NCBI GenBank assembly: GCA_964035545.1
Contig: OZ037770.1
Coordinates: 1,240,001 to 1,304,000, forward strand
DNA: 64,000 nucleotides
DNA from: Bugula neritina
Taxonomy: Eukaryota > Animalia > Bryozoa
Direction of reading: 5' to 3'
A model generated the notes under the pieces. That model was not told the origin of the DNA, searched no databases, and saw nothing but the letters and a program-made list of their open reading frames with translations. Position numbers and translations under genes: made by a program. Within the stretch, counting starts at the first letter, position 1, and each line of letters begins with the position of its first letter. This document shows positions 1 to 63,740 of this stretch, piece after piece.

Positions 1-396
1 GAGTAGATAAATCCAAACTAGCAAAATCACAAGAGTTGCGTGTCATACACATGCGCAATATATTATCATTATAAAAAATTCTGGCTCATTACTACAAGAT
101 GAGTAATTGTGTTTGGATGAATGTTTATACCTATTTCTTAGCTCAACTTATATAGAGGTATATGAAATTCATCTCTTGGCTTAGTAGAGGACAGGATGAA
201 GCCGATGACAGAGCTGTGCTAAATGTTAAAAGCTGAAACTAATAATTGCAGATAGTCATTGTCATTCTTTATACTTGTCAACAGCTTTAAAATACTGGCA
301 GCTCTTCTGACTTTAAGTTTAAATTTTTCAGGTTTGTGTACATTAATTATGCATGCACCCAAAATTTCGAGACACGCACACACACACATATCTCAA

Positions 397-443
397 TCTG
401 TGTACAGCAGCTGTTTCGGGGTGTGTCCCCTCATCAGCACAGA
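397..443 (-). ncRNA. Type I hammerhead ribozyme motif, solo copy, intact core
   Basis: Minus strand reads UCUGUG-CUGAUGA-GGGG ACACA CCCC-GAAA-CAGC U GCUG-U A-CACAGA. This gives a 6-bp stem I, the conserved CUGAUGA/GAAA core, a 4-bp stem II, a palindromic stem III and a GUA cleavage triplet (cut predicted between 403 and 402). Confidence 0.88.
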
Positions 444-971
444 ACAGAGTACCATGGTTATTGCACTTTCAAGAAACTTTTCAAACTTAATGTCTAGTAT
501 GACAGATAGCAGTTAGATTAGAGTGATTAATAGTCACATGTAGAAGTGAACTTATATTGATAAATAAACGTATACTGATGAAAGCACTATATATTTAATG
601 TACATAAACAAAGCAACTTAAGAGCTGAAGAATCTGAACTGCGTGTCAAAAATAAAACCCCCCTATAAAAACCTCAAATTATTCCCAAGAGGGGATTCCC
701 CCAGGTTAGAAACCATTTCTCTACACTCTACCGTATATTGCTCCCCCCACGTATACTATTATACATGCACTGGTCAAACTATTGTTGCTGGTATTTTGAG
801 TTGCGTAGTGCTTTCATGCAGAACAAAACCCCTCCTCCTAATTACAGCCAATAAACGATTCTTCAACCTCAGCGTTGGAACCATATACTATCCATCTGAT
901 ATGGAGCACTTGAGTGAATGTCCTAACTCACAAAGCAGAATAATCCTAGCACCCCAGCTATCATAACTTCA

Positions 972-3437
972 ATGAGTAACTCTAGCTACAGTTTTGTTAC
1001 AGCAACTGAAGCAAGGGGTATAGATAGGAAAATGGGTGACAAAGTTTGGGTTAACATAGAGGAGTTTATAACTAATAATTTGAAAGGAAATGATCATTTT
1101 AAAAATGAATATCATGTTGAAAAAGAACTTGGCAGAGGGGGTTTTGGAGTAGTGTACAGAGCCAATCCTCTTCAATCTGAACATACCCAAGACCTAGGAG
1201 AAGAAGTTGCCATAAAGGAAATAGAGGTTGAAAGCTTAAACGATTTGGCTGCAGCTGTTAAAGAAGTGTTGATGTTAAAAGGTGTCGATAAACATCCAAA
1301 TGTTGTGAAAGTTTATGATGACTTGTCTTGGTACACTTTACCTGAAAATGAAGATATACCCTTTGATGATCAAAATGATATACAACCTGAGGATATGCTG
1401 AATGCCTTAAAAAGTGATGCAGCTGGGACTGTAGACTGTAAAGGTGAGTTTTATCTTACTGATTACGTTAAAACTAGTAATAAAATAGTGAATAATCTTA
1501 CATAAAACTGGTGATATAACGTTTAGCAAAATGGTGAAAACTAAAAAAAAATGGGTTTTTATATCTATTGTCATTATTCATCTGAATATAGCTATACAAG
1601 ACTCCCAGCTTCTCCGACTCACCTAGCTGTTGAACTTTTCTGTCACTATGCGTACACAAGTATATTATAGCTAATAACTTTTAGAACAAGCTGAGTTTTG
1701 ATTAACAGTGTATATATCCATAATGAGTTTAGTAAAAATTACCTTATAAGATCTTTGTAAAAGTCTTGGTTTAAACAGGTTTCCACACTACCCCCTCATT
1801 CACACTTACCGTAACGTACGTCGTAACAGCAAAAATAAAATGGCGACGCTGTTGCATTTTGTCAACGGGTGTTCACACATTGCCGTAAAAGTACAATGCA
1901 TGACGTTGAGCTGTGACCAATCATAATAAAGCCAACTCTTGCCTGCGGTGATTTGAACGCCTTTGAATATTATTTACAAATTATTCGCAACATTCTTATC
2001 AAAAGATGTTATATAAATGCTATTTACTAAATAAAAGCAATTACATGAAAAGAATCTTTCTTTTAAATATATTAGTTTTCAAAATAATTGTGCAAACTAA
2101 TTTAAATAATGAATATTTAAGCCGTCCAAATCATTTTTAAGTTTTTGGTTTGCTTGATTTTGTGATTAGGGAAAGCTAAATTTTTAAGCTGAGTTTAATT
2201 CAAACAAGCCGGATAAAGATGTTTTAATCTTTTAAAACTTTTGAATTGGTTAAATTAAATCAAAAATAAGCGATTAAAATAAACTAGCGAAAATGTTCTT
2301 TAAGTTTTAGTACCAGATCAACTTTACCCAATAGGAGCCTGCCGTGATTTTTTGAATCAAGCACTGCTTGATCAACGCCGCAACGTATACCGGAGTACGA
2401 TTTAGCCCGGATGTTAACAAAAATCGCTAAAATTTGCTGTTACGGCGTACGGTACGGTAAGTGTGAATAGGGGGAATATCTTTATGAGCGCGCTAGGCTG
2501 TATTATATAATATTAATTTTATTAACAACTAATTTTTTCATTTAGTCATTATCATTTTGTTACAATTTGCAAATATATGATAGTATTTTGACATACTATA
2601 TATAATTTATTCAGGAATCAAGTTCTACATTGTCATGGAATTATTGAGTCGCACTTTAGAAGAGGAAGAGGCCATGACTGATGATAGAGATTCAATATGG
2701 AAAAGAGTACTAAGTCTCACTGATGGTCTTGAGCATCTCCATAAGAATAAATCTTCCATGGAGACTTAAGGACCAACAATATATGCTTGAGAGATGAAGA
2801 CTCTCTTGTGTTGATAGATTTTGGGCTGAGTGGTACAGGATCGATGGAAGTCATTCCCCGAAATGCAAGTATAAGCAGCAGTTCACCATCTACAATCGAT
2901 AAATCAGGGGATATGATTGGATATGCAGGAATTATTTTTGGAATTTCTTATGTGTATAACCAGTACCCTGAATACGACTTTGACATCGTTCCTCTACTGC
3001 ATAAATGGGGTAAGGTAGCTTTAAGAGGAAAGGTGTTGGAGGACCTAATAGACCCATTAGGTCCTGATGATGCTGAGAGGGTCACTGAGGTTATTGTTCA
3101 ATGTGTGAATAATATAGACTCACCACATCTAATACCTTCTATCTCAGCTGTCAGCCAGGTTATTAACGAAGCTGAGTCTTACAATAAAACATGTGAAGGT
3201 TTGAATAAGTTTTGTAAATCGGCTGATATAAAGTTTGAGCAAAGAATGCTCTACAGGGCTTGGTAGGAAGAGCTAATTGCAGCAGTTCCAGAAGGTTTGC
3301 AGTCATCTGATGGGAAACTCATGCGTGATAAACTAACAGAGTTCTCCGATGATGATTTCCCTTATCTTAAGGTGTACAACTCTATTAGTGTGGATAAAAT
3401 TAACGAATTAGCCGGAGCATATAGTAAGAGGCTATAA
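972..3437 (+). pseudogene. Divergent protein kinase, copy 1, disabled (exons 972-1443 and 2615-3437)
   Basis: Has GRGGFGVV, VAIK, HGDL and DFG motifs and a GT-AG intron matching copy 2. Relative to copy 2 it has a 1-nt deletion (AAAA to AAA at 2749-2751) just before HGDL and a TAT to TAG nonsense change at 3264-3266. Confidence 0.85.
1791..2474. mobile_element. MITE / non-autonomous DNA transposon in the kinase copy 1 intron
   Basis: About 42-bp terminal inverted repeats: ccccctcattcacacttaccgtaacgtacgtcgtaacagcaaa (1791-1833) and tttgctgttacggcgtacggtacggtaagtgtgaataggggg (2433-2474). Absent from the copy 2 intron. Confidence 0.85.
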
Positions 3438-5138: not shown

Positions 5139-6169
5139 AAATGCATGTGTTACACGTTAATGTTGTGAAGCCATTTATAATTGAAATATTAAAATAATAT
5201 ACTATGTAGTATATAATACCTTACAGTGTACTTCATGCTTCAAGTGCTACATATATTACCCTACAGCAGTGAGTTCAATATTTATTTTCATACCATTCTT
5301 CCATATTAATAATTTCTCCCTTTTGAAACCCACGATATATTATATGTGCTTTAAAAGGCTGACATGGTATATTATTTATACCCTATGCTTGTTCTATTAG
5401 AATTGATTATAATATAACTCTGATAAAACATATATTATGCAGTATATAAAACTTAATAATATGATGGCTGCAGCTGATGCTTGTGTGCTAAAGCCTGGTT
5501 AAGTCTAGCTTTGTTTAAGACAGCGCACATCTTAAGTCACTGCAAAGGTGAAAGCAGTTATTGGTTAGCATTGGTAAGCATTATACATCACATTATAGAT
5601 ATTTGGTGGTGAAAAGCACCAAAACTATTATATACTGCTTTATAAGCTATTCGAGAATAGATTTTGCTTGTTGAAACCCATGGATCTCTTCCATTGGTAA
5701 AGATTTCATTGCGGAATTATCAACCCTCATATAACTGCATGATATGGAATATTGTCAACAGGGTGTGTACTAGAATGAATGATGTATCAAGTCAAGAATC
5801 TTCTCTGTTTCTAAAAGTAGGCCAAGATAAAATACTCAAGTTCACACTTAGTTAAGATTTCAGAGATATTGCATGCCTTAAAAATTTCTAACAGAAAATC
5901 TGAAACCAGTTTTAATTTTCTTATAATTAATTCAATAATGTGGAAAAGACACAATGATTTTGATATAGCTGGGTGTCTGCCACAACTTTAGTTTAGATAA
6001 TTTGAAAGTACTGATGCCATGCTATAAAAAGTTATGATTGTAGAGCAAATACATCTATACTAGGTACATGCAGCATATAATTCACTGAGATCATGGCTGC
6101 TTATAAAGTTCCTGTTAGCTATTACTTTCGAAAAACCTATTTACCTTTATTTCTATATAGTATCACAGG

Positions 6170-6319
6170 TAGCAGTTATAGGGTAGAGTGATTAATAGTC
6201 ACATGTATATATAGAAGTAAACTTCTATATTGCAAAAGTTGATATATATAAATATACTGATAAAAGCACTATAATGCCATACAGTTCAGCTTTTTCAGCT
6301 CTTGCTTTGTTTAGTTATA

Positions 6320-6395
<76 letters not shown>

Positions 6396-6526
6396 TATAA
6401 CTAAACAAAGCAAGAGCTGAAAAAGCTGAACTGTATGGCATTATCATAATTAAATTCCCCCATAAAAACCTCAAATTATCCCCAAGGGGGGATTCCCCCA
6501 GGTAAGGAACCATTTCTCTACACTCT
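6170..6526 (+). repeat. Degenerate third copy of the kinase upstream region, containing a (TA)n tract at 6324-6391
   Basis: Shares agagtgattaatagtcacatgta and ataaaaacctcaaattat..ggggattcccccaggt..aaccatttctctacactcta with 509-730 and ~9180-9416. Confidence 0.8.
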
Positions 6527-7516
6527 ATAGGGTCTAGGTAAATGTTTCTATAGGTGGTGGTGAACCTCTTACCCTTGAGCATTTTGAGAAATTCAAGATG
6601 GCCGCCAGGCAGAGACGGTTCTTTATAATTCAAATGCATCTATCCATCAGAGCTAAATTTAAGGTTCCAATGCTTTGAAATCTTCAGAAGTTAATATAAT
6701 GAAGATGCATGCGCCTTTATCATGTGTATAATCAATCAGAGGCAAAGATGAGTAAGTTATCCGCAAACAGTGTATTATATTGCACACCCATTGATGATAA
6801 CATCGGGCAGTCAATAGTGTATTAGGTATGAACGTATATTATTTTAAAGAAACTCAAATTTATATAAAGTTATAAGTTTCTTGTTTACTCGAAATAGACA
6901 ACAAACTGCTACAAAGTTATGAATTTGCTACATGGTAAAACTTAGCTTCGATAATGAGATTATTTTGATGAATTATTAAAACAATTTTTAAAAAAAAGCC
7001 AATGCAGGCTGTCGTAAGCAAATATCAACATATATCAGATGTATAAGGAAGTTGGAGAGCACTTAAGTTTCTTTTGCAATTGAAAATTTAGTAAAATATG
7101 AGCTTCAAGCCCCACAGCTCAATGAGTCAATCTGAAGACAACTCCAAATTTCAGATTTAGTTTTCCTTCTTCCTTATTTAATCTACACATAAATATTAAA
7201 CAATAAGTATTATATAATAGCAAGCTTATCAAGAAGTTTGTCATGTGATAATTGCCAAATTAAAACGCCTGAGATTACAAAAACAAAAAGGAAAATATTT
7301 TTACACCTTCTGAGATTTATTACTAAAATATAAAATTTGTAAGCGTAGTTTATATACTCCATTCATTCAATAAGTAATATTATTTTGTTTCTTAATATTA
7401 GAACTTTTGTACTAATGTCGTATTATGCATTTCAATAGAACAAACAAAACATAATTGCAACTTAATTAATAAATATCTAGCTCTATATGTGTGTGGTGTG
7501 CCGTATGTAATGTATA

Positions 7517-7563
7517 TCTGCGCACAGCAGCCATTTTAGGGTTTGTCCCCTCATCAGCACAGA
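7517..7563 (-). ncRNA. Degenerate hammerhead ribozyme copy, probably inactive
   Basis: Keeps stem I, CUGAUGA and stem II. GAAA is changed to AAAA and the cleavage triplet to GUG. Confidence 0.7.
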
Positions 7564-8044
7564 ACAAAGTACCAAGGCTCCACCATTGTGATGGAAAGAA
7601 AAGAAGTTATGTGTTGCTATTAAAGCAGGTTGTTTACAAGGTAACCCATAGCTTTGTAAAGAGCCAGATAGACATTGTCTTGGTTACAGCTTAATGCTTA
7701 GTTCAATAAATAAGTACAACTATAATATATAGTTGATGTTAATATGGTTATAACTATATATAGTTATGTTATACATTTCAATACTGCAGTCTTTGGAGTT
7801 GGGAAACAGGAGCAGATGACTCTAAAATGATGTCATAATAGGAGCTACATACAGATGTTGTTAAGTGAGTAGATAAATCCAAACTAGCAAAGTCACACGA
7901 GTTGCGTGTCATACACATGCATTATATTTTTATAAAAAATTCTGGCTCATTACTACAAGATGAGTAATTGTGTTTGGATGAATGTTTATACCTATTTTAT
8001 AGCTCAACTAGAGGTATATATGAAATTCATCTCTTGACCTTTAA

Positions 8045-8232: not shown

Positions 8233-8802
8233 ATCTCTTGGCCTTTAATTTCTAGCTAAAAACTTACTTTATTCTGTTTTATCAGTAAAGAAAATCAATC
8301 TTATAAGAAGGAAAATATTCTGATCAGTATTGAGACAACTGAGAAGGAAATGTTATGTTGCATAACTGGCTTAGTAGAGGTCACATGATCACTGGTCAAC
8401 AGAGCCCTGCATTAAGTTGATACCTGCATGGGAGAGCATCCGATATTATAAAAACTCGATGGCCGGATAAAAGGATATAACACATCATAATATAATATTA
8501 TTATAATATTATTTTCTTGGGGTCCTATAATACTGTAATTTCCCATATTATACTTTCACAGGCGATTTAATTAATTTGAACAGGATGAAGCTATAGTGAC
8601 AGAGCTGTGCTAAATGCTAAAATCTGAAACTAATGTTTATTTATTGATAGATCTATAGTCATTGTCATTCTTTATACTTGTTAACAGCTTTAGGATACGG
8701 GCAACTTTTCTGACTTCAAGTTTGAATTCTTTTGGCTTGTGTACATTAATTATGCCTGCACCGATATTTCGAGACACTCGCACACACATATATATACCTC
8801 AA

Positions 8803-9113
8803 TCTGTAGACAGTAGCTGTTTCGGGATTTGTCCCCTCATATCAGCACAGAACAGAGTACCATGGCCCACACCTTTGAAATAGTAGAAACTTACAGTTTT
8901 ACTAAAGGTGTGTAAACCCAAGCCAGAGTGCTCAAGTGACTCTAGGGGTCACCTAGGAGTCACGAGCCTTGCTAAATGCTAGCAGCTTGAGTTTGTGACC
9001 ATGGTTAGAGTGCTCAATCACTTAATGTCATTAAGCTGAGCATTAAATGAGAGCATAATATCTCAATCTGCGTACAGCAGCTGTTTCGGGATTTGTCCCC
9101 TCATCAGCACAGA
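8803..9113 (-). mobile_element. Non-LTR retrozyme-like element: a 264-nt unit bracketed by two hammerhead ribozymes
   Basis: Hammerheads at 9067-9113 (intact, GUA) and 8803-8851 (GUC, 2-nt insertion in the core) are direct repeats 264 nt apart. The spacer forms several hairpins and has no meaningful ORF. Confidence 0.78.
9067..9113 (-). ncRNA. Type I hammerhead ribozyme motif, intact core
   Basis: UCUGUG-CUGAUGA-GGGG ACAAA UCCC-GAAA-CAGC U GCUG-U A-CGCAGA. The stem differences from the 397-443 copy are G-U wobbles that keep pairing. Confidence 0.88.
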
Positions 9114-9653
9114 ACAGAGTACCTTGGTTATTGCAATTTTAAGAAACTTTTCAAACTTCATGTCTAGTATGACAGATAGCAGTTAGAGTAGAGTGATTAA
9201 TAGTCACATGTATACATAAATTAATGTAGAAGTGAACTTATATTGATAAATAAACGTATACTGATGAAAGCACTATTTATTTAATGTACATAAACAAAGC
9301 AACTTAAGAGCTGAAGAATCTGAACTGCATGTCAAAAATAAAATCCCCCTATAAAAACCTCAAATTATTCCCAAGGGGGGATTCCCCCAGGTTAGAAACC
9401 ATTTCTCTACACTCTACAGTATATTGCTCCCCCCACGTATACTATTATACATGCACTGGTCAAACTATTGTTGCCGGTATTTTGAGTTGCGTAGTGCTTT
9501 CATGCAGAACAAACCCCTCGTCCCAATTACAGCCAATCAATCAACGATTCTTCAACCTTAGAGTAGTAAACATACAATCGATCTGGGACGGGCACTTGAG
9601 TGTCCTAACTCACAAGGCAGAACATTTCTAGCACCCCAGCTATCATAACTTCA

Positions 9654-11675
9654 ATGAGTAACTTTAACTACAGTTTTGTTACAGCAACTGATGCAAGCAG
9701 TTTAGATAGGAAAATGGATGACAAAGTTTGGGTCAACGTAGAAGAGTTTTTAACTAGAAGAAGGAGAGGAAATGATCATTTTAAAAATGAATATCATGTT
9801 GAAAAAAAAATTGGCGAAGGACGGTTTGGAGTAGTCTACATTAAAGATACCAAAGAAGTTGCTATAAAGGAAATAGAGGTTGAACACTCAAAGTCAGAGG
9901 ATTTGACTGCAGCTGTGGTGGAAGTGGTGATGTTGAAAGGTGTTGATGAGCATCCAAGCGTTGTGAAAATTTATGGTGACTTGTCTTGGTACACTTTACC
10001 TGAAGATAAAAATCATATTCTCCCTAGTGATATCCTGGAGACCTTAAAAGACAATGCAGCTGAGCCTGTAGACTGTAAAGGTGAGTTTTATCTTACTGAT
10101 TATGTTTGATCCGAAAAGATTTTTGTCGACAATAAAATTATACAATTGATTATTTTGAAATTTGTCAAAGTGATTTTTTACTCCAGCTCATCTGAGTTGC
10201 AACAATGGAGCATATAGTTATAATCATAAGTCAGTTTTGGAAAATAATTTTTTTGCAGAGTTTTTCATCAACTCATATATATATATAGCACTGCCATGCA
10301 TTAGTGATGTTAGAAAGGGCATCATTTGGCCATTTTATTTTAGCAAAATCCGAAACTTCCAAATCTGCTAAAATTTACCCCCAGAACTCCCATAGTTAGT
10401 GGTCAAAGTTAGAAGGTCCATTAGATATGCTGTACCCCCACCATTTTTTTCTTGAGTTCCCCTTAACTTAGGGTAGGTTTACCTTTCATTTCGTTCAATA
10501 TTCTACGTGAAACTACTTACAAAATAGTAAATGGTTTGACATAAAACTGCATATGGTGATAAAGCTTAGCATATAATCATAAAAACTATAAAACAAATGG
10601 GTTTTTATATCCATTGCCATTACTCACCTGAATATCTACAAAACTCCCAGCTTCTTCGACTCACCTGTTGAACTTCTTGTCACTATATATACATACACCA
10701 GTATTATAGTTAATAAATTCTGAAACAAGCTGAGTTTTGGTTAACTGTGTTATATCCATAATGAGTTTAGTAAAAACTACCTTATAAGTTCTTTAGTCAT
10801 TATTATTTTGTTACAATTTGCACACCTTCAGCAAATATGATAGTATTTTGACATATTATATAATTTTTTCAGGAATCAAAGTCTACATTGTCATGGAACT
10901 GTTGAGTGGCACTTTAGAAGAGAAAGAGGCCATGACTACTGATAAAGATTCAATATGGAAAAGAGTACTGAGTCTCACTGATGGTCTTGAGCATCTCCAT
11001 AAGAATAAAATCTTCCATGGAGATTTAAAGCCCAAAAATATATGCTTGAGAGATGAAGACCCTCTAGTGTTGATAGATTTTGGGCGGAGTGGTAGAGGAT
11101 CGAAAACCGAAACCGAAAACCCAAGTAATAGCAGTTCATCATCTATCAAGAAATCAGATGATATGGTTAAATATGCAGGAATTATTTTTGGAATTTGTCA
11201 GCACCCTAAATACAACGTTGGCATCGTTTCTCTACTGCATAAATGGGGTAAGGTAGCTTTAAGAGGAAAGGTGTTGGAGGACCTAATAGACCCATTAGGT
11301 CCTGATGATGCTGAGAGGGTCACTGAGGTTATTGTTCAATGTGTGAATAATATAGACTCACCACATCGAATACCTTCTATCTCAGTTGTCAGTCAGGTTA
11401 TTAACAAAGCTGAGTTTTACGTTAAAACATGTGAAGGTTTGAATAAGTTTTGTGAATTGGCTGATATAAAGTTTGAGCAAAAAATGCTCTACAGGGCTTG
11501 GTATGAAGAGCTGATTGCAGCAGTTCCAGAAGATTTGAAGTCAGCTGATGGGGAACTCATGTGTGAAAAACTAAAAAAGTTTACTGATAATGATTTCCCT
11601 TATCTTAAGGTGTACAACGTTATTAGAGTGGACGATATTGATCGATTAGCCAAAGCATATAGTAAGAGGCGATAA
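9654..11675 (+). CDS. Divergent non-RD Ser/Thr-type protein kinase, copy 2, intact (exons 9654-10080 and 10873-11675; 409 aa)
   Basis: GEGRFGVV glycine loop, VAIK, alphaC Glu, IVMELL hinge, HGDLKPKN and DFG. A phase-1 GT-AG intron joins the two ORFs in frame. Confidence 0.9.
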
Positions 11676-13627: not shown

Positions 13628-13812
13628 CGCTGCCTACAACTAGACCCGCTGCCTACAACTAGACCCGCTGCCTACAACTAGACCCGCTGCCTACAACTAG
13701 ACCCGCTGCCTACAACTAGACCCGCTGCCTACAACTAGACCCGCTGCCTACAACTAGACCCGCTGCCTACAACTAGACCCGCTGCTTATAACTAGACCCG
13801 CTGCCTACAACT
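13628..13812. repeat. 19-bp minisatellite (cgctgcctacaactagacc), ~10 copies
   Basis: Directly visible near-perfect tandem array. Confidence 0.97.
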
Positions 13813-16651
13813 GAACCGCTGACAAGTGTGGATAACGTAAGGAAAGAGCTATACCTTTGACACAGGTTCAGGTGAGTTCAATAAGTCAATCTTGTAGGGC
13901 GATGAGAATCATATGCGTTTTATCACTAAACTCAATCACATGTAAATAGCCAAATAAGTCTGAAGTGACTGAAATTAGCTTATGTAGTGTTGAGATTGCC
14001 CTGTGGCCTCTGTGTGGCTCTTGTGCCCCCCCCCCCTGTGGCCCCTGCATGGCATAATGGATCTCAGTGTAGGCAAATACTTTACAGTGAATGTCTTGCC
14101 ACCCAATCCAAGCAATGCAATATTCTTGGCCTACCAGCAAGTTCATTTAATTTATAATTGTTTAGCCGTAGAAATATTTTGTTTCAAGTCCCCACCCCTG
14201 CTAGAACCCCCCAAAGGTAGGTGGGTTGAAATCTGTGACTTAGCACAAACTAGGCTGGTGCTCTAATCAGTCAGCTATGGCCGCTGCATGGTTAGCAATG
14301 TTAGAAATGGTCAATAAGCAAGTTTACACACCAGAGCACGCAAGATCAGTATTGTATGATAAGATGCTTGTGAATTTTTATTGAATAAAGAAACTTTTTT
14401 CACAATGATGATAAGAAATAAAATGCAATATCACTGTGAACAGATAACATATCTAGTTTGAAACTTGCTTTAACTTCTGGATGAAATACTCTATATATTA
14501 ATAGGCCTCCGTCAGTATGCAGTGAAACCGGGTTTGATACTAGCTAGAGAGCGGTTCTTCTTTGTGACTCATACTCTGTTCAACATAAGTGGTAGAGTTC
14601 TATAGCTATTTTATGAATTTTTGTTTGCGTTGCTGCTCAACCTCCCATATAGGAACATAATTTCTTAATTTAGAACACAGGCCTTACTCAAGTTCATCTG
14701 CACCTAATGTTAGACTCTTGACGTTTACCCAATGCTTAGCCTTATCATAGATTCGAAATACTATAGTGCCTCATGTTACAAATACGAGTAACTGGAATCT
14801 TAAACCAACACCATTATTTTCATAACCAACAGGCTACTAGCAGATGTTAACAAAACTTTACTTTCATTTCTCAACTACTAATGCATGTAAACTATAGAGT
14901 CTATTCTCTCAAAGCTAGCCATTAGTCAGTGTGAATAGTCAGTTTGCTGTTTCTATAATACACAGCCATTATTCCGAGCAGGTAGTAGTGACCTAGGTAG
15001 GTTAAAATAAACACCACCTTTCCTTTGATCCATTCTTCTAGTCTCCCTAGACTAACAAATCCTGGGTTAAGACAGGATAAACTGTAATTAGCTCAGCATT
15101 TAGTCTTAGCTGCAGGTGCTGTTCACTGGCAGCACTGTACGCTGCCATATTTTACATAATATAGCATGAAGAATTTCAGCCTAGGAATGGATATAACTAG
15201 TAGCATTTTATATACAAGTGGCAAGTCCAAAGAGGTAGATACTGATACTGGTAATACTGTGTATATTCTATTCTGTATATTGCTATATTCTGCTGTATGT
15301 ATTCTTATCAGTAGTGAATAAGTTTAGAAAGTTAGATAGCTTTTTGGTCTAAGAAGGGTGGAAACTTAATTTTTTCTATTGAAGAAGTACGACTCATAGC
15401 TGTTTCAACTATAATGCTTAGTAGTTATAATGCCTAGTTAATACTATAGTGGAAGTATTTACAAATAGTTATTAGTTATTACTAGTATTAACTATTAGTG
15501 ATAGTGCTAGCTAGAAGATCATTAAGGCAGTTTGATGACTAAGATTAATAATCTATGCTGTACAACAAACTACTGAATGGATAAGAAGTTACATTTCTTG
15601 TCATACGAAAACAATGACTCATTTAAATGTGTTTGAACAGTGAGATATGATACTTCTTAGATCCTATGCTATCTGGGGCCAAGCATTCACTTTTCTCATC
15701 CTTTGTTGAAACTCACAGCAAAAGTGGGTACATACAAAATCAAGATTTTGTGCCCCCAAAAAGAGTTGAGTCTTCTGTTTGATACAAATGATAGAGAAGT
15801 AAAATCTTGCTACAGCAACGTGGACTGACAATGTCTAGTTCCTAAAGTTTTGCTGCTAAAGACCAAATTTACTTACTCCTAGGAGGAGGCTGCATTTTAA
15901 TTGATCAAAATGTGTTCCCTTTTGCACTGTTATCTGTGCAGTAGGAAGGTCATTAATACTATTGCTCAATTCAAATAGACGGACACAATGAACAAACAAA
16001 TCTAAAGATAGGTGTATTGAGCAACAGACTGATAATAGCTTGTTATAATCAATTTACAAGTTGATTTAATGTCAATCAAGTTTGTATATCCACATTAGCT
16101 AAAGTCAGTGAATTCTATAAAACATTTGCTTCCAAGATGATTTGAACCCAAGACCTTCGGCTTTCAGGCATGAAAGCTAACTATTGAGCCACCTAGGCCA
16201 CTGGGCAAACTAAGCACTACATCCAACTCAGTTCTCAGAACTATTACTATCACTAAAGGCCGAAATAGCTTACAAAACCTTTGCCCACATTGGAACCCAA
16301 ATGCGGTAGCCATTAGAGCACCAGGTCTACCAGGTAAACTGAACAATACAATACATATCAATGACGTAATTCTTTCGTTGTAGTCACAGGAGCAGTTGTG
16401 GAGTCCGGACACAGCCGTGACCTTACGTTACAACGAGGACATTTACAGAATCAACAACAGCATGTTTGCTCCGCCCCTACATGTCAGAAGTGAGAACAAA
16501 GGGGGAGATAATCTAGTGGGATATGATAGATCGAGACTTGCTAGCAGACAGCTACTTCCTGCTTCTAAAAAGTGAGTTAGTCCTTGATTGAGCTTATAGG
16601 CTGGCAAACCATTTATACCTCTTGTAATTTAATCGGTTTTACGAAATAATT

Positions 16652-20482: not shown

Positions 20483-23400
20483 TTAATACGGGCCGGGCCG
20501 TCTTGGCCCGTTATAGGGACCAGAATTTCTTGGTCCATTGTATGGGCCTGGTCCTCTTGGCCCATTATATGGTCCACCTCCTCTTGGGCCATTGTAAGGC
20601 CCAGAACTTCTGGGCCCATTGTAAGGTCGAGGACCATTAAAAGGTCCAGAATGTCTAGAACCACTTCCATTAAAGTTCATCGAATTGGATCCAAAATTTC
20701 TAGGGCCATTAAATCCGGAGCCCCTAAAGTCCGACCTGGGCCCGTTGAAATTATTACTAGTTCTAAAGTCTTGGTCTGCCCACTGGTCCGAGTCTGAAGG
20801 GTCACCCAGTAGAGAGGGGCCACTTCGGCCCAACTGGTGAGAGTCTGACTCCCCGGGGTGATCTCCGAGCAGAGATGGTCCCGGCGGTCCTTCTCTTGAG
20901 CCTGAAACACCGAAACATCAGAGTTAAGCAGACCAACTAGATAAATACAACTCCTTACAGAACTGCTAAATAGAGCACTTGAAGAGCATAAAGGTAGATT
21001 AAAACTTTCTTTTTCACACAATATAAAAATAAAAACTTAAGAAGAAACTTCACAACCGGCCAATGAAGTAACATATGCTACAGCAGACGTTAGAAAATGC
21101 AGTTACCTTGAGGTCGGGATGGAGGGTCTATTTTGCCCTCCCAGGCAGCTGCGAAGGACTGATCTATCTTCTTGGTGTAGGTGTACCTGCCCCTCTTCTC
21201 ATTGAGGAACACCTCGGAGTTCATGTCTCTCCCGTCCATATCCAGTCCCGGGATTCCGTCTTTGCTGTTGGCTATAAGTGAGAACAGAGTGCATAGTAAC
21301 TAGTAGCAGTGAGTAGGACTAGCAGTGAGTAGTACTAGCAGTGAGTAGTACTAGCAGTGAGTAAGACTAGCAGTGAGTAGTACTAATAGTGAGTAGTACT
21401 AGCAGTGAGTAGTACTAGTAGTGAGTAGTACTACTCACTACTAGCAGTGAGTAGTGACTAGGACTAGCAATGAGTTGTACCAACAGTTAGTTATACTAGG
21501 ATTATTTTGTAACTGAAAATTGTAAACAGCAAACGGTTAATAGTGGAAATTACTAGCTAGTTGTATTAGTATTTAATAGTTAGAAGTGAAAGTGATCAAT
21601 TAATAGTGCTTCCAAGCTTCACGTCATTCGAATGAAGATTTCATTAGATGTTTGGAAACAAATGCATCGAATGAAACTCCCAACCATAAGCTCATACAAA
21701 CCGCAATCACAAATTCATCCATATGGGCATCAATGTGCTTAGTGCGAAACAATGGAAACACAGTGAGTAGTGAATAGTATTTATGAGTGAATAGTGTGAG
21801 TGAGTAGTGAGGGTGAGTAGTGTGAGTGAGTAGTGAGATTGAGTAGTGAGAGTAAGTAGTGTGAGTGATTATATAGTTAGACTGAGTACCTTGCTTTATC
21901 TGCTGCAGCTGCTCCTCGTCTATCCCCATACCCGGCAGCAGAGTGGACGTGGAACTCATGCTAAAGGAAGAGGAAGTAGCCGAGCCGACACTCAAGTTCT
22001 GCTGCGAGTGTGGGTCGTCCATCTCGTCCTCCACAGGAAGTAGATTCAGGTTGTACCTGTCCTTCATCGAGTCTCCCGGCTTGTTGCGGGCCCAGAACTT
22101 AGTAGAGTGATCGTTACTACCTGAGAATACAGTGGATATGTCAAGAGAGCACCTGCTCACCTCTGACATACAGACAGAGCACCTGCTGATCTGTGACATA
22201 CAGACAGAGCACATAGTCACCTATGACATACAGACAGGGCACCTGCTCATCGCTTGTGACATATGTCAACAGAGCACCTGCTGATCTGTGACAAGTGTCA
22301 ACAGAGCACCTGCTAACTCTGTCATATAGAAACAGAGCACCTGCTCACCTGTGACTAGAATGTGTCCGAGAGGATGCCATGCCATACTCCATATAAAGCC
22401 CTCATGAGCCGTGTCATTCGATCCAACCTCTTTATCCGTACTATAGAAGAGAATGAAATGCATGAGAAAGCTACTCTGTATATATCACTCAAACCACCTG
22501 CTCTATGGTGTCAGATGATGACAGCAGTCAAGATAAAACTCCATAACTTAAGTTGTGTTTAGAAGAGCATAAAAAGACACCAGAGGGGAACACAACTCTG
22601 TGTGCACACAATCTTGAGTGAAAGCACTTGGTGTCTAAGTTGTAAGAGTAATTTCAAAATCTATGGCATTGAATCAATTTTTAGTTCAACATTAGCCTGA
22701 CAACTTACCCAACCGACCAGAACTTGACGGCACCGTCAGAGCCACCGCTAGCAAAGAAGTCTTCATAGATAGGGTGCCACGCCACAACTACCAGATAAAA
22801 TTAAAGTGTAGAATTAAAACAATGAAATAACTGCTTTTTGATGAATTGAAAATTTCAAGAGAGAAAAGAGACTGTGAATTAAGAAGGCAAACTAGCCTGT
22901 GAGCTTCAAAAACAATAAACTGTTTTCGTTACAATAAAACAAACACCACATGCTTAAGTTCCCCAAAAAGATAATCCCAAAACACGCAGCCTGTCTGGAG
23001 ATATTACATACTAGTAGCCTCTTTCTGGTGTCCTTTAAACGTCTGAAATTCACTTTTCATGTTTCTGATATCAAAGAGCTTCAGCAGGTGATCTCGAGAT
23101 GCCGTGAGAAACCAGTTTCCGTTTTTATTCCACTTCATTGACATGACTGTGCTCTTGTGGGCGTGGCTACAGCACAGAGTAAACATTAGCATGTGCTCTT
23201 GTGGGCGTGGCTACAGCATAGAGTAAACATTAGCATGTGCTATTGTGGGCGTGGCTACAGCATAGAGTAAACATTAGCATGTGCTATTGTGGGCATGGCT
23301 ACAGCATAGAGTAAACATTAGCATGTGCTATTGTGGGCGTGGCTACAGCATAGAGTAAACATTAGCATGTGCTCTTGTGGGCGTGGCTACAGCATAGAGT

Positions 23401-26400
23401 AAACATTAGCATGTGCTCTTGTGGGCGTGGCTACAGCATAGAGTAAACATAACCATGTGCTATTGTGGGCGTGGCTGTACCACACATCAGTATGTGAGGG
23501 CGGTGCCATAAAAGACACATGTGGGTGTGGCTGTAACTCACATGGTACTCAGACTATTGCCAGTTCTAGCATCCCACAATTTGATTGGCTGCTGACTGTC
23601 TTTGCTCCCCGAGACAATAATGGACTTCTGCGGGTGCCAGTCGACACATTTGACGTCTGCGCCATGACCTGAAGAGATCAGAGAAATTCTGATGTCTATT
23701 CTGAAACTTAGTCTCAGGATTTTCAGTTTGAATCAAACAAAGTTCATGTTAGTCAACGGGTGAAGTGTGTCCAAGATGTCTAGAGGGGGAAATAAGTAGG
23801 TCATTTTACTTAATTTAGTACACACTGGAAATCTCCAGTTTTTTAGCTATTTTTCACAATTTAGCTGCTAATTTATATGGTTTTTGCCCAAAACTAATAA
23901 AATATCAACAAATACACCTAATTTCTTTAGTTTTGCTTGATTTCCCAAGTTTTCCCAATTATTTAGCTAATTTTGATTTGTGGACATGGCAGAAACATCT
24001 AAGCCAAGTTTACTAGATGTGCTGACGACTCCTAATACTCCCTGAGTTATATTCACAATTATATCAGCCCAAATAGACTGATATAATTTGCTGGAAGATG
24101 AGACAAATCCCACCAGTCAAAGTAATAAGTAACTGCTAAGGTGGACATGACATTTCCTATGAAAATAATATATATCTCAAATTACATTAAAAAATTATAC
24201 TATATATGATGCAATGATTTAAAAAGATGGGGAGATTTCCGTCTATTAATCTACATGAATTCAAGCAGCAGCTAGAAATTAAAAACTTCTATGAAAAAAG
24301 AAACATATTAAACCATTATATTAAATGTAAAAATCTAAGGTGATCAACATGAACTTGGTCTATTAGGTCCCGTAGCATATTCTGTGACCCAGAAATGTGC
24401 TGCCGTGTTTTCCAAACCAATCAAATATTCCGCTGACACTGACCTTTGAGGACTCTCTCCTCGGAGCAGCGGATGAAGTCGAATATCCTGACGGAGCCGT
24501 CGTCTGAACAGGAAGCAAACTTGTGGTCTGTCGGGCAGAAACTCAGACCCCGAATGGCCTCTTTGTGAGCCTACAATGATGTCTAAACAGTGTACAATGA
24601 TATCTAAACAGTGTACAATGATATCTAAACAGTGTACAGTGATGTCTAAATCTAAACAGTGTACAATGATAGCTAAACAGTTTACAATGATGTCTATACA
24701 GTGTAAAATGATGTCTAGGGAAAAGAGTGTCACTTAAAAAAGTTTGAAGACTAGAGTTGTTAAATAAAAAATTATTAAAAAAAACTCAAAATGAGAACAT
24801 CTATTATTATATACCTTTGGAGAAAATAAAACAGATAAACTTATCGATTAGTTTAATTTAAAATTGAGATTATATTCCAACATAATATTTTAAACCTGCT
24901 AGTTCAATTTCTCTACAGACCTGCCAATCATATAAAACAGACCTGGAACATCTTAACGTTGTTCATGTTGCTCTGCCAATACTTGACGAAGCCGTTGTGG
25001 TCTCCTGTCATCATCCAGTTGTCATCATGGCTCCAGATCATAGAACGGATGGATGAGTCGTGAGCCTGCAGGTAAAAAATGAGGTACATCAGTTACCTGC
25101 GCACTACCAATACCACAGCAAAAACAGCACAGCGAGAAATTGTCTTACCTGTAAAATGGTTTCAAAGTTGAAGGTGAGGCCGTTCCACAAAGTAAACTCA
25201 CCGCTGGAAGCTCCAGTAACTAACCTTCGACCTTCAGGAGTCCACTGTAAGAAAATGGAAGCTTTACAAGGCACTGACTGTACAGAATACAGAAGCTAAT
25301 ATACCAGAAAAGAAATAGCAAATACCCACCAAATTATAATCACCAACTACTTCTATTGACCAGCAAAGCATCTTTTTATTCGTATTTATGAGTAATAAAT
25401 TGCTCTTTAGCCTAGTTTCAGTATTTATTTTTAGGTATAAAATTTAGGTTACTCAAATTATTATCATTTTTCTCGCTATGCGACATAGCCTCAAAGCAAA
25501 CATAATTTTTTTAAATAAAAACATGCAACAATTGAAAATTCCACTTTCTCCACAACACGCTTAGCACTAGTATTCTATACGCAGTGAGTTAGAGAGAACT
25601 CGTACCGCCACGCAGAAAATTGGACATCTGACTTTATTTGTGGATTGTCGGATAAACTTGGTGGTGACGCAGTTGATGGGGTTATTCCTCATAGCACTGG
25701 GCGTTGTCAGCTCCCCTAGATACAGTGTGTCCGGCAGCAGGGCGGGGCTCTCGTCAGCATCTCGGAGGTACAGCCGGTTCTGAGAATAGAGAGCTGAAAA
25801 CTTCAATTACTCAATACAATAGGCTAATGAAACTGTTAAGACTGTGCTGATAGGTTGAGTTTAGTATAGCTAGCCAATAGAAGAGCTCGTTGGTTGAAAC
25901 TAAACACATATAAGAACTCAGTTCTAAAGCCCTGTGCCATCTGCACTGCTTCACATACCCAACGAACACCAGATAGAGCTATATACCACACAATAGAGGA
26001 ATGTTAGGATGATTTCAGAAGTTTATCTAAAGGGAAAGAATAAAGCTCAAGTGGAAACCACATTGTGCCAACAACTCCCAATCAAATACTATATTGTAGT
26101 CTATAAATAAATGTTTCAAGGAGCCGTTCTTGTGAGAGCCTCCACCCCCCCCCCAACCCTTAGTTTTCAATTGGGCTACGGCTGTGCCTCTTGCAATGCT
26201 GGCAACAAGGCTGGAGAGATTTTACTGTCACAGTAAAAATTAGAATAGAATTCTCTTCTTGACATCACCTTGACCCCATGACTTTGTGTCACACCAGGTC
26301 TGTCCCCCTAACCACTGGAGAAAGACAGCTGTTGCATCGTGGGTAAATATACTACAGAGATTGAAAGAACTATATTGGAAAAAGAAATCCCCCACAAAGA

Positions 26401-41400: not shown

Positions 41401-44400
41401 GTAGTCTTTTTAAACTTGACAACTCAGCCAGATAGAGAAATAGTCATGTCTATTTTCACAAACAGAAAACTTCCAAATACTTGATTTCAGGTTCTAATGT
41501 CATTGGTTTCTCAACAAAATAACTTTAACCTGTCTCGAAGCTTTTATTTGTTATTTAGCCTAATTAAACTGGTTAATTACTTCATTATAGGCATTGTATT
41601 ATATCGTCAAACAACATCACCATTTTCCAAGTTTCATTTCATATCAACTATTACTAGTCAGATAATATAATATATATATTCACCACACGCACAGCCTACA
41701 CGTACGATCACATGATGTACAACTACAAGGGCCACGCTGTGATTGGCTGCAACTGCACGGTGGAGCTGGAGGCGTGTCTACGCAATGAGTCAGCGACAGG
41801 GTCAGCGCTTGCAGAGGAAGTACTCGACACTCAGTTTGGGACGTTTGAGTACGTCAAGTGTCTGGTAGTCAGCAGGGAGAAGAAACAGTGTGTAGAGTGG
41901 GACCCCGTCTTCCACAAGTAAGTGGGGAAGGGGGGCTCATCACACCACCCGACCTACTCATACTAATAGCACACCACACAAGAAATGCGCTAGAAGCAGC
42001 ACTAAATTGGAGGTCACTGAGTGTAGTAGTTGGGCACTCGAACAGCCTATACAATCTCTGCATTTAGTCACCCCCAACTTGGTGCTGATTCTAACGATTT
42101 TCAACAGGAGACTATTTCTATTGCGTTTTTTTCAAATTCAAAACAATCAAATTGATTTCCCTAAAAACTCAAAAGAGTTGAAAGAAAACTCAAAGTATGT
42201 TCGTTCAACTTGCAGGTGCGAGAAGTACAAATGGGCAAACTACGGGCACCTGATTAACCTGTCAGAATACAAGACAGACACAAGCAGGTGGTCTGCAGAA
42301 GGCGATGAGTCATTGGCAGAAGAAACAACAGGAAACGAGACAGTAAACATGGAAAATCCACCCACAAAGCAGGAGTTATAACCAAATAAACTGGATTCTA
42401 AACACAGAGGAGAATAAACTACAAGTAAACATAACATGTGTAAAAGTAGACTAATATCCTACGCATAAAGCAAACCTGTTTGAGGGGGGCTGCTGCGACG
42501 TCTCGCTCTGCCCAACTGCAGAAGCAGGTCTATCCATGTGAGTCGTCTGCTTAGGTGACTCACTGACATGACTGACAGGTGCTTGAGAGCTGAAGGTCAC
42601 ATGACACAAATAGCTGATCAGCTTAGCCTGTGCTCCAGCAGCGAAACTGTGGGTGGCCGGGTTGGAGAGCATTTGACTAGCATTTTGTCTACAGTTAGAT
42701 ACAATTTTATATTCTCAGATTTTTAGAATGTTTGATGTTTATAGGAGAATAAACAAAATAACTTGATATGCATGTGTCTGTTGACTCAGAGATAAGTCAC
42801 CAAATGGCAGGTGCTTGTAAAGTGATTCATGTCAGAAAGTGACACCTAGATATGACATGAATCACTTTCATAACACAGTCTACTACCAATACTATTGCGG
42901 AAAGATCTAGAAACAAAATAAAGATTTAGCGATCACATGACCATCATAGATGCCAACGGCAGCGTATAGTTTACCGTTCTTCCAGAGTGACATGCTGCCC
43001 GTCCAGCACTGTGAGGTTACACGCCCAGCTGAGAACGTAAGCTCGGTAACTGTCCTTGTGGTGGGTGAAGTGTTGATAGGTAACACATGGGTTGTTCATC
43101 ATCGAGAGCTGCTCCAGTCGACGCAAATCCACCAGATGGCGCACCTGCGTCAGCAAAAACATAACTTTAGCAGTTTTTTAGAGTCAAATTTTTTGAACTG
43201 GAGAGTTGTTAGTTTGCTAAGAAAAGATCCTTTAATGAACATAAAACGTCCAATGCTTTTAGATAATTAAAATTAAAAATTATTATTATTATAGAAATCT
43301 GGCAGACTTTACCTGGTAGAGCTCTGAAATCTCGTTCTCCGCGAGGGAGAGTATGCTTAGATTCTTGGGAAGGTATCTAGGAGCATCTTTTATATCTCTG
43401 ATTATGTTACCATGTAGTAGCAGAGTCTACAATATGTTACCATGTAGTAGCAGAGTCTAAAATATGTTACCATGTAGTAGCAGAGTCTAAAATATGTTAC
43501 CATGTAGTAGCAGAGTCTACAATATGTTACCATGTAATAGCAGAGTCTAAAATATGTTACCATGTAGTAGCAGAGACTAAAATATGTTACCATGTAGTAG
43601 CAGAGTCTACAATATGTTACCATGCAATAGCAGAGTCTAAAATATGTTACCATGTAGTAGCAGAGTCTACAACATGTTACCATGTAGTAGCAGAGTCTAC
43701 AACATGTTACCATGTAGTAGCAGAGTCTACAACATGTTACCATGTAGTAGCAGAGTCTAAAATATGTTACCATGTAGTAGCAGAGTCTACAATATGTTAC
43801 CATGTAATAGCAGAGTCTAAAATATGTTACCATGTAGTAGCAGAGACTAAAATATGTTACCATGTAGTAGCAGAGTCTACAATATGTTACCATGCAATAG
43901 CAGAGTCTAAAATATGTTACCATGTAGTAGCAGAGTCTACAACATGTTACCATGTAGTAGCAGAGTCTACAACATGTTACCATGTAGTAGCAGAGTCTAC
44001 AACATGTTACCATGTAGTAGCAGAGTCTACAATATGTTACCATGTAGTAGCAGAGTCTAAAATATGTTACCATGTAATAGCAGAGTCTAAAATATGTTAC
44101 CATGTAGTAGCAGAGTCTACAATATGTTACCATGTAGTAGCAGAGTCTAAAGTATGTTACCATGTAATAGCAGAGTCTAAAATATGTTACCATGTAGTAG
44201 CAGAGTCTAAAATATTTCATCATGTGACAAGCAGGAAAACATTTATAATTAAAGTTGTTATTATGATATAGTAAATTCAATTTAGTAAACTTTTGGAAAT
44301 AATTTAAAAATCAAAGTAAGCCATATTTTCCAAACAAAACTTTTAAGTTTAGGAAGAAATAACCTATTAATTCTAAGAGTTATCTCCTTGATGGAATACC

Positions 44401-60863: not shown

Positions 60864-62579
60864 ATGAATGATATAGAGAAACAAAGGAATACGGGTCAAG
60901 CAGAACCTCTCGGTAGAGTGAGAAAATGGGAAGTTTTTCCTGGAAAGAATCGTTTCTGTTGCGATGGGAGAATCATGATGTCTACTCAAATTGGAATATT
61001 CTATTTCACAGTGTTTTTGATAGTGGTCACCAGTGCCTGCTCTTTTGGAATGGAGTGAGTATATGAAAGATCATATTTTCAGATCATATTTTAATCTTTA
61101 ATAGTTTAAGTTGCACTAAAATCACAACAGTTGAACAATTTTGCTCAAAAGCATTGTGATTTGAGTTTTACTCTTAAGTTTGCTTATACATGTTTAGCAA
61201 AGTTATTTCTGCAATTTATATGCTATGTCTTACCAAAAATGTAATTCTGTTTTTCAATTGAATGTGATTGTTTTTGTTTGTAATATTTAGTTTTATCAAC
61301 TACAATATTTAATTTATTCTGCGGTTTTCTTTTAGTGCCTATTACACCTGGTTACACATGCACCCGGTTGTTCCCATAGCTGGGGCTGCTCAATTTGTGT
61401 TTGTCATTGTTGTACTCTTCCGAACAGCATTCGGTGATCCTGGAGTTATCCCTCGGGCTACTCCCACTGAAGCAGCGGCAATAGAAAAACTTATTGGTGA
61501 GTCTGAGTCTGAAATCGATTGTTGTCCAATTGTTTTTGGTTTTAATTATGGTGTCGGTTTTAAAACTGTTGGAGTTTTCCTCTCTCCTTAAATGTTGTAA
61601 TGGCAACAGACTTTGAATATAATTGAATTTTTACCTTTCTCCTTAGAACTGTACTGAATTATAGATTTTTAATACAATATGTTATTTAGTATACACCCTA
61701 TTTGTTGTTTTGAATTTAAGTTATTTATTTTGCTTTAATTTTTTTTTATCGTACCTTTTTTATAAGAATCATATTTCATCATTATTTAAAAGTTATTTGA
61801 GAAACTTTTATTAATTTTTCATTTGCTGCTTACTGCGGTTTTTTTTTTGTTCACAAAAGTGGTTGTGCTTTAATTTATTCATTTTGTGTTACTTCTTCGG
61901 TTTATTTACCTCTGGTGTTGGTCTGTGCTCAAAAATATTATTTGATATTTTTCTACAGAGAGGCAGCAACAGGAAGCTGCCGCCCAGTCAACCAACGCTC
62001 CGTACCGCCCACCTCCTCGGATTCGCAACGTCACAATCAACGGAGTCGAGTTCAAACTCAAGTTCTGCTACACTTGTAAAATATTCCGTCCCCCGCGGGC
62101 CTCCCACTGCAGTGTCTGTGACAATTGTGTGGGTATGTATTATTCCAGTCATGTGACAGTTGCAACTGCTAGAAGAATGTTTCCAAGCAATTCTTTATGT
62201 TTATTATTCAGAGTGAAGGAGTTTTTGAGTCAGTTTTGAAGAAAACGTGCTGTTCTTAGATACATGAACCAGAATCTAACCATTCGGCTGAAAAGACTAG
62301 AAGTAGCTAGGAGTAAAGCTTCGGGTTGAATATAGAAATATATTGGATGTAGAAAGATATTGCAACGTTTTAACAATTTATATTTGCAGACAAGTTTGAC
62401 CACCACTGTCCTTGGGTGGGCAACTGTGTGGGCCGAAGGAACTATAAATACTTTTACCTGTTTCTAGTATCTCTAACTGTATACTGTGCGTACCTGCTGT
62501 CAGTCTCAGTGGCTGCTATAGTGCTCAGTGAGTATCACTGTTATAACTACTACTACTACTACTACTAGTACTACTACTG

Positions 62580-62617
<38 letters not shown>

Positions 62618-63740
62618 GCTACTACCTCTACTACTACTACTACTAGTACTACTAGTACTACTACTACTACTACTACTGCTACTACTAGTACTACTACTAC
62701 TACTGCTACTACTACTACTACTACTAGTAGTACTAGTACTACCACTACTACTAGTACTAATACTACTACTACTACTACAGCTACTACTACTACTACTACT
62801 GCTACTACTACTACTACTACTACTGCTACTACTACTCCTACTACTACTACTACTACTACTATTACTACTACTACTACCACTACTACTACTACTACCACTA
62901 CTACTACTACTACTACTGCTACTACTACTACTACTACTACTACTAGTAGTAGTAGTACTACTACTAGTACTACCACTACTACTAGTACTAATACTACTAC
63001 TACTACTGCTACTACTATTGCTACTACTACTACTACTGCTACTACTACTACTGCTACTACTACTACTACTAGTACTACTACTACTACTACTACTAGTACT
63101 ACTACTACTTCTACATCAATTGTGTTGCAGGGTCAAAAGAAGAGTCGTTTGCAGTTGCTATGCAACAAGGTCCACTCAGCCCAGTCGTAGCCTTGGTGGC
63201 CTTCTTCTCCATCTGGTCGGTGGCAGGTCTGGCCGGGTTCCACACGTACCTCACTGCGCTCAACATGACCACCAACGAGGATGTAAGACACCATATCACA
63301 ATCTCATAGAGCTTATAGTAGTATAGTATATATTCACTTTGATATGACTCACTCTGAATATATTCTGCAGATAAAAGGTACTTTCAAGCCGAGCACGGGG
63401 AACCCCTTCTCGGCAGGAAGTTATTTCAGTAACTGCGGAGTCGTAGTCTGTGGTCCCAACCCTCCTTCGCTCATAGACAGACGGGGGTGGGTCTCTGAAC
63501 ACGACATACCCCCCGCACCAGCAGCTTCTGCGTCAGGTTGGCGTCTCTAGGCTATTACATTATACTTTTGGTAATATCTCTTTTCTATTAGTTTATTTTT
63601 TAATGCAATAGAAATTATTTAATTTTGTTGATTTGCCGTTTTAATTACTGGTTTCTTGTCTATTCAGGTACGGTAACTCGAGAGTTTGCCAGCAGTGCAC
63701 CTGGCGCTCACTCTGTCGGTCGGCCTCCTTCCACTATGCA
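60864..63740 (+). CDS. DHHC palmitoyltransferase, ZDHHC14/18/9 (Erf2) subfamily, 3' end outside the window
   Basis: [85 protein letters not shown] and NPFS. Confidence 0.95.
62546..63113. repeat. (CTA)n microsatellite, ~570 bp, filling a ZDHHC intron
   Basis: Directly visible between the GTGAGT donor (~62528) and the tgttgcag acceptor (63130). Confidence 0.98.

Follow-up and report, generated by a model that had tools for sequence, protein, structure and literature searches.

A window of 64,000 nt from the bryozoan Bugula neritina (by window we mean the whole stretch of DNA that was analysed) carries at 9127-8794, on the minus strand, what is with high probability (about 85%) one old insertion, some 1.2 units long, of a 271-nt non-coding metazoan non-LTR retrozyme with the life cycle proposed below. 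The structural features that define such elements in Metazoa were all found: a short unit, a type I hammerhead, tandem and dispersed copies, low GC, the lack of LTR, PBS and PPT, and a predicted circle that is self-paired. A first-pass annotation, made from the letters of this DNA, had put forward a candidate new retrozyme. The assignment to the non-LTR retrozyme type is borne out by a dispersed 271-nt family in short arrays, non-coding, with a paired circle by prediction and with flanks that are not those of a Penelope element; the word "new" has to be toned down, since elements of this kind have already been described (PMC7229834; bioRxiv 10.64898/2026.07.22.740005). The element is a non-coding cellular repeat, neither a virus nor a provirus.

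Ribozymes of the window copy

The features discussed in this and the following sections are located in the window as follows.

9128-9957, minus strand: host flank upstream of the element and outside it; over its full length it matches only the local paralogue 458-1299
9058-9127, minus strand: HHR-A, a type I hammerhead of canonical form whose triplet is GUA and whose predicted cut is 9073/9072
8809-9072, minus strand: cut-to-cut unit of 264 nt, against a family norm of 271 nt, with three long hairpins and ~90% identity to the majority sequence of the family
8794-8865, minus strand: HHR-B, helices as in HHR-A, GUC triplet (C8809), predicted cut 8809/8808
8770-8793, minus strand: 3' flank of the window copy, a short (AT)n remnant passing into (GT)n, the decayed counterpart of the family (AT)n tract
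7508-7573, minus strand: decayed solo hammerhead remnant of the same family, with GAAA box and helix III mutated
388-457, minus strand: solo hammerhead with canonical core and GUA triplet, at the corresponding position in the other paralogue of a local segmental duplication

HHR-A is made up of the last ~55 nt of a 5'-truncated leading unit, which begins at about unit position 216, and of the first 15 nt of the next unit. The 5' strand of its helix I (9119-9108) reads CUC, a UGU bulge and UCUGUG, and the 3' strand CGCAGA, UU and GAG. The inner stem I is formed by UCUGUG (9113-9108) with CGCAGA (9072-9067), and the outer stem, CUC/GAG, lies beyond the UGU/UU internal loop. The core box CUGAUGA (9107-9101) is followed by helix II, GGGG/UCCC with the loop ACAAA (9100-9088), by GAA (9087-9085) and by helix III, ACAG-CUG-CUGU (9084-9074), with A17 at 9073. 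The three-helix architecture of a hammerhead is present in full, helix I having 6 bp, an internal loop and 3 bp more, helix II 4 bp and a 5-nt loop and helix III 4 bp and a 3-nt loop.

The conserved type I core (C3-U4-G5-A6-N7-G8-A9, G12-A13-A14, A15.1-U16.1 and H17) is complete in HHR-A (9107-9073) and in the solo copy (437-403). HHR-B lacks an intact core, as it has two extra nucleotides (AU, ~8840-8839) within the CUGAUGA box; it continues into the 15-nt tail UACAGAUUGAGGUAU at 8808-8794, and the same tail closes the insertions of the family. The two ribozymes are direct repeats, 89-96% identical, and these ~70-nt stretches are the only repeats that flank the 264-nt unit. Of the two type I hammerheads claimed for the minus strand by the first-pass annotation, HHR-A is thus canonical, while HHR-B has the same helices around an interrupted core and fails a strict descriptor. 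The distance of 264 nt between the predicted cut sites was confirmed from the sequence, and so was the 2-nt insertion from which the same annotation had suspected partial decay of the copy.

The descriptor, written by us, comprised the core boxes, the three helices and the NUH triplet. Applied to both strands of the 64-kb window it retrieved exactly two motifs, HHR-A and 437-403, with none on the plus strand, against a chance expectation of 0.037 motifs per window (300 first-order Markov simulations). HHR-B was missed because of its 2-nt insertion. The scan with the Rfam hammerhead models proposed earlier as a check was run as well: nothing reached the gathering score, and nothing appeared at E<=10 over 701 nt. 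An 86-nt stretch gave only sub-threshold alignments, to Hammerhead_3 (RF00008, 12.8 bits) and to RAGATH-1-hammerhead (RF03152, 11.7 bits), and RF00163 against the genome gave a single match of 25.4 bits, located elsewhere, among the 73 of 16234 candidates that were scored. This failure is a limit of the models and of their filters and does not reflect a missing core feature. Since no curated model reaches its threshold, the identity of these motifs as hammerheads rests on their explicit anatomy and on the chance estimate.

A dispersed family of 271-nt units

The spacer between the ribozymes had been expected to recur in the genome, and similarity searches did find it as a 271-nt family in short tandem arrays. 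With the 334-nt stretch of the window copy as query, BLAST gave at least 89 matches (687 candidates at first look), with identities of 84-93%, on contigs C1-C9; neighbouring matches are often 269-272 nt apart, the spacing of units in arrays. The 35-nt ribozyme core is found in 569 genome copies at three mismatches or fewer, versus 0 for the reversed pattern. Arrays range from 0.1 to 5 units and are present on all large contigs.

As a coordinate frame we have used the 271-nt majority sequence of 26 distinct units, which serves for mapping only. Most copies are 95-100% identical to it and the window copy about 90%. In the majority ribozyme the triplet is GUC, and the inner helix I pairs perfectly over its 6 bp. 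The unit is AT-rich (GC 0.43-0.44), and no crude Pol III A- or B-box pattern was found in it. The spacer had been described as non-coding, and indeed, on the strand of the element, no ORF that overlaps it or lies beside it reaches 120 aa.

Variation within the family follows the arrays. We identified 30 variants that are common to all units of an array, many of them absent from every other array. The private change C3>T, for instance, occurs twice in the 1.03-unit insertion of locus L051, once in each of the overlapping copies.

History of the locus

The regions 9957-8580 and 1299-191 of the window are old local paralogues, 83-89% identical. The solo hammerhead at 388-457 has the 5' junction of HHR-A and the 3' flank of HHR-B, with exactly one unit fewer in between. 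Because both paralogues share the 5' junction and the 3' flank, the insertion predates the segmental duplication. The solo copy would most simply derive from recombination of the two ~70-nt ribozyme repeats with each other and loss of one unit, in the manner of a solo LTR; gain of a unit in the other paralogue appears less likely. The remnant at 7508-7573 also has a paralogue (L032:666-731, minus strand), ~380 nt upstream of the window start, and therefore seems to be a second old insertion that was likewise carried along by local duplication. The host flank at 9128-9957 is, besides its full-length paralogue, also copied in part nearby, around 6158-6530; in the rest of the genome weak matches (short, 70-83% identity) are confined to its last ~100 nt.

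With a divergence of ~10% and an insertion in the core of its downstream ribozyme, the window copy is probably no longer able to release a unit-length RNA.

The window also holds several minisatellites, with 19-nt (x10), 44-nt (x7.5) and 30-nt (x27) repeats, plus a long (ACT)n, at 13628-13821, 23148-23476, 43403-44215 and 62546-63114; they are unrelated to the retrozyme.

The insertion footprint

A way to read how such an element moves is to compare the ends of many independent insertions. We have examined 50, of which 30 loci were found by similarity search and 20 were picked solely by a perfect ribozyme core. All except one (49/50) end identically: after the cut site come 15 nt more, CACAGAUUGAGAUAU, which form the 3' strand of helix I, and (AT)n begins there. 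The 5' ends are variable, 14 of them lying at unit positions 6-12 (11 at position 12 itself) and the remainder spread over 27-235. Position 12 is one exact turn from the 3' end, and it is the preferred start of single-unit and multi-unit copies alike. The shortest insertion measures 20 nt and the longest 1360 nt (about five units), and in most cases (TA)n also adjoins the upstream side. The GA that immediately precedes the terminal AUAU is absent from five insertions, and the internal copy of that template stretch in L051 keeps it. Most copies carry only one ribozyme and are therefore unable to release a unit.

In combination, the fixed 3' end, the 5' truncation at random points and the microsatellite target constitute the signature of target-primed reverse transcription. 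The window copy conforms to this footprint: from about unit position 216 it proceeds through one full unit and the 15-nt tail to a short (AT)n, by now decayed into (GT)n.

In three loci, L060 (C2:33418237-33418853), L061 (C3:3688142-3688751) and L017 (C9:2738301-2739436), two retrozymes of opposite orientation are found inside one TA microsatellite. Their 3' ends face each other across ~100-180 nt of TA repeat, an arrangement that recalls the inverted ones of Penelope-like elements.

Predicted fold of the unit

The first-pass annotation had listed three hairpins in the spacer and suggested folding the unit as a circle. All three are present in the minimum-energy circular fold, and the circle is predicted to be highly self-paired (z about -7 to -8). 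The window unit folds at -91.6 kcal/mol with 73% of its nucleotides paired (z = -7.0) and the young unit of L051 at -97.7 kcal/mol with 72-73% paired (z = -8.4), versus about -58 +/- 4.7 kcal/mol for shuffled controls. A consensus fold over 20 copies has 84 pairs, in which changes are mostly one-sided and G-U compatible, so that pairing is kept; a compensatory change was seen in only 2 of the 84. So young a family has accumulated too little covariation for the fold to be supported or rejected by it.

The canonical fold of HHR-A has a computed energy of -11.9 kcal/mol, and an alternative pairing of the isolated ribozyme, its minimum-energy structure, is better by ~3 kcal/mol. Helix III as a hairpin contributes -0.5 kcal/mol versus -14.1 kcal/mol for a duplex of two copies (11 bp with one U-U mismatch). 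Since helix III alone is marginal and the two-copy duplex strong, cleavage as a dimer is plausible on these calculations. Dimer action has been demonstrated for the retrozymes of salamanders (PMC7229834).

Occurrence in RNA libraries

The unit was found in 18 public runs from 6 studies, including marine symbiont and biofilm samples, although most of these runs are RNA only by guess. On L051:2700-3050, contigs of four runs span the unit and not its unique 5' flank. The head-to-tail joint, where the sequence goes back 271 nt, occurs in contigs of X11 (oligo-dT RNA-seq) and of X4 (RNA by guess only). These data are contigs, in which RNA ends are invisible, a tandem copy and a circle give an identical joint and DNA carry-over is possible. 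The unit does occur in libraries labelled as RNA, in contigs that say nothing of its level, cleavage or circularity.

Over the same stretch of L051, the run X2 (a "METAGENOMIC RNA-Seq" symbiont library) has word depths in the tens of thousands, far above the other runs. Such a depth may be due to a very high RNA abundance or to the composition of the library, and it cannot be read as expression.

Penelope-like elements in the same genome

Two 3' fragments, with neither an RT domain nor a full-length copy among them, are the source of what we know here about candidate Penelope-like helpers.

L015:1837-3124, plus strand: Penelope-like fragment, 5'-truncated, with (TA)n at both ends
L062:900-1590 (also L021:2346-2999), plus strand: second Penelope-like 3' end, its protein 47% identical to that of L015

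The reading frame of L015 has an RT-thumb/HTH-like stretch followed by a Cys-rich linker and by a GIY-YIG-like domain with an internal CxxC motif. This last domain is reached via one frameshift and matches PF01541 weakly (E=0.054). Relatives at 50-60% identity are found in corals and sea anemones, and they carry PF26215 together with sub-threshold GIY-YIG matches. The 3' UTR contains a minimal hammerhead-like motif at ~2978-3022, with a perfectly palindromic helix III. Directly after the L015 fragment, in the same microsatellite, there is a 5'-truncated retrozyme fragment.

In L062, which likewise lies in (TA)n, a hammerhead-like motif of the 3' UTR at 1501-1547 scores 25.4 bits with RF00163, below threshold, and the pairing of its helix I appears non-canonical by eye. 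Genomic candidates for the family of this element number 305, some of them in direct pairs at a spacing of 2.6 kb and others in inverted pairs; an arrangement in direct and inverted pairs is typical of Penelope-like elements (PMC8557442). The 5' end of the L062 fragment is a 65-nt inverted copy of itself (L062:920-984).

No nucleotide similarity was detected between the retrozyme unit and the 3' UTRs of L015 and L062. A search of the genome with PF01541 gave a single match, in an open frame of 87 aa (an ATG ORF of 84 aa) with no long ORF in its neighbourhood, and Pfam on the long ORFs of the fetched loci identified host genes only (kinase, ankyrin repeats). Among other host sequences, a NEK4 exon of locus L046 shows 80-81% identity to proteins of amphioxus and limpet, as expected of a bilaterian invertebrate, and for a kinase-like ORF of the window a single relative was found.

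Among Penelope-like elements (PLEs), a (TA)n bias has been reported for Naiad, and the Cys linker was proposed to mediate such a bias in Neptune (PMC8557442). Retrozymes have been regarded as PLE derivatives (bioRxiv 10.64898/2026.07.22.740005). The common target, the common style of insertion and the literature (PMC7229834; bioRxiv 10.64898/2026.07.22.740005) make a Penelope-like element the likely helper.

Proposed life cycle and alternative explanations

In the life cycle that we propose, arrays with at least two ribozymes would be transcribed, the ribozymes would excise unit-length RNA, perhaps paired as dimers via the palindromic helix III, and a cellular RNA ligase would join this RNA into a highly paired circle. 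The endonuclease and the reverse transcriptase would be supplied by a Penelope-like element that nicks (TA)n. The nicked TA repeat would anneal to the AUAU at unit positions 12-15 and prime cDNA synthesis, which by stopping early would give 5' truncation, by halting at this AUAU once a full turn was made the peak at position 12, and by going on for several turns the arrays.

The part of this scheme for which the footprint is most informative is the nature of the template. Since the 3' ends are reached 15 nt after the cut, the cut site must have lain within the template, which was therefore not a cleaved linear monomer but either a religated circle or an uncut transcript. The junctions lacking GA, the starts at position 12 and the variants private to arrays make a circle, or at the least an internal priming at AUAU, somewhat more likely. 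That the footprints are a direct record of circRNA-templated retrotransposition, in which a TA-repeat-specific Penelope-like enzyme primes on the 4-nt AUAU of a ligated circle and copies it for one or more turns, we put forward tentatively, as a reading with somewhat less than even chances. Its main rival is a linear, SINE-like template, namely an uncleaved read-through transcript with an (AU)n tail on which the nicked TA repeat would prime; the hammerhead would then be a passenger from a Penelope ancestor, and copying would not involve circles. Tail-primed copying of an uncut transcript would likewise yield ends that lie 15 nt beyond the cut and run into (AT)n, the single ribozyme of most copies could release no unit, the RNA contigs do not separate tandem copies from circles, and homogeneous master arrays read through as linear RNA are also compatible with the data. 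On the other hand, the absence of GA from five junctions, and its presence internally in L051, fits a short internal priming at AUAU better than a long tail; private variants in every unit of an array need several turns on one circle or master arrays that were already homogeneous; and circles have been documented for such elements in other animals (PMC7229834). On balance we consider the linear template rather unlikely.

Two further explanations dispense with a retrozyme altogether. Penelope elements carry hammerheads in their pLTRs and form partial tandems, and with Penelope-like fragments present in the genome the unit could be the terminal repeat of such an element at this locus. However, on its strand the element neither overlaps nor adjoins an ORF of that minimal size (120 aa), the paralogues that cover the upstream flank along its length are all local, so that this flank is no dispersed repeat, the 271-nt unit recurs alone and without coding sequence in the ~50 insertions examined, and it is dissimilar to the two Penelope 3' UTRs. 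With no ORF for RT and GIY-YIG around 8794-9127 and a flank specific to the locus, we have rejected this reading, the least probable of all. Hardly more credible is a satellite DNA that spreads at the DNA level only and retains a hammerhead-like sequence by descent, with no mobility through RNA. Tandem arrays do occur, and the window element itself was copied by segmental duplication, with one unit gained or lost at the DNA level, but the insertions number in the hundreds and are scattered over all large contigs, and their anatomy, a fixed 3' end with 5' truncation at random in TA-microsatellite targets, is that of reverse transcription and contradicts a spread by DNA duplication alone.

Comparison with known systems

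The satellite 2 of newt and axolotl and the Sm-alpha repeat of Schistosoma consist of ~300-nt repeated units with a type I hammerhead. These systems (also in PMC7229834) resemble the family described here in the size of the repeat unit and in having a hammerhead in each one, and the weak helix III suggests dimer action, as in salamanders. They differ in sequence and in organisation, since the bryozoan arrays have at most 5 units in the loci seen and are dispersed in microsatellites, versus long satellite blocks.

The closest similarity is to the metazoan non-LTR retrozymes (Cervera and de la Pena 2020, PMC7229834). These too have one type I hammerhead per unit (units of 170-400 nt there, 271 here), go from monomers to arrays of few units, are low in GC and have no ORF, LTR, PBS or PPT. 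They share as well a highly self-paired circle by prediction and the presence in RNA libraries; for the present family both circle and cleavage are predicted. The strict placement in (TA)n, with a fixed 3' end 15 nt past the cut, stands out more clearly in B. neritina than in those descriptions, which mention only target-site duplications that are variable and larger, "when present".

With the hammerheads and pLTRs of PLEs and their non-autonomous derivatives (PMC8557442; bioRxiv 10.64898/2026.07.22.740005) the family has in common a palindromic helix III able to dimerise, tandem and inverted arrangements and 5' truncation. The (TA)n preference is also shared (reported for Naiad, proposed for Neptune; PMC8557442), and PLE fragments lie here in the same microsatellites. 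Unlike the minimal variant of PLEs, the retrozyme ribozyme is full-size (stem I of 6+3 bp with an internal loop, helices II and III of 4 bp), and it is placed at the very 3' end, compared with ~45-130 nt from the end in the PLE fragments found here.

The LTR retrozymes of plants (PMC4918200) are similarly non-autonomous and delimited by ribozymes, with a circular RNA intermediate proposed. In contrast to the present family they have type III hammerheads inside LTRs, PBS and PPT, 4-bp TSDs, a size of 600-1000 nt and the machinery of Ty3/Gypsy.

Biological meaning

The window copy is an old and probably dead relic that mainly illustrates decay: one paralogue has acquired an insertion in a ribozyme core, and the other has lost its unit and kept a solo ribozyme. 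The family to which it belongs is a clean retrozyme family in a marine bilaterian, and its young copies and microsatellite targets make the rules of insertion unusually readable. It offers a natural data set for the question of whether circRNAs made by ribozymes are templates for Penelope-type reverse transcriptases, and it may also be of use in designing self-cleaving cassettes for circRNA expression. If true, the circle-primed footprint would be genomic evidence for rolling-circle reverse transcription of an animal circRNA, a step that has so far only been postulated.
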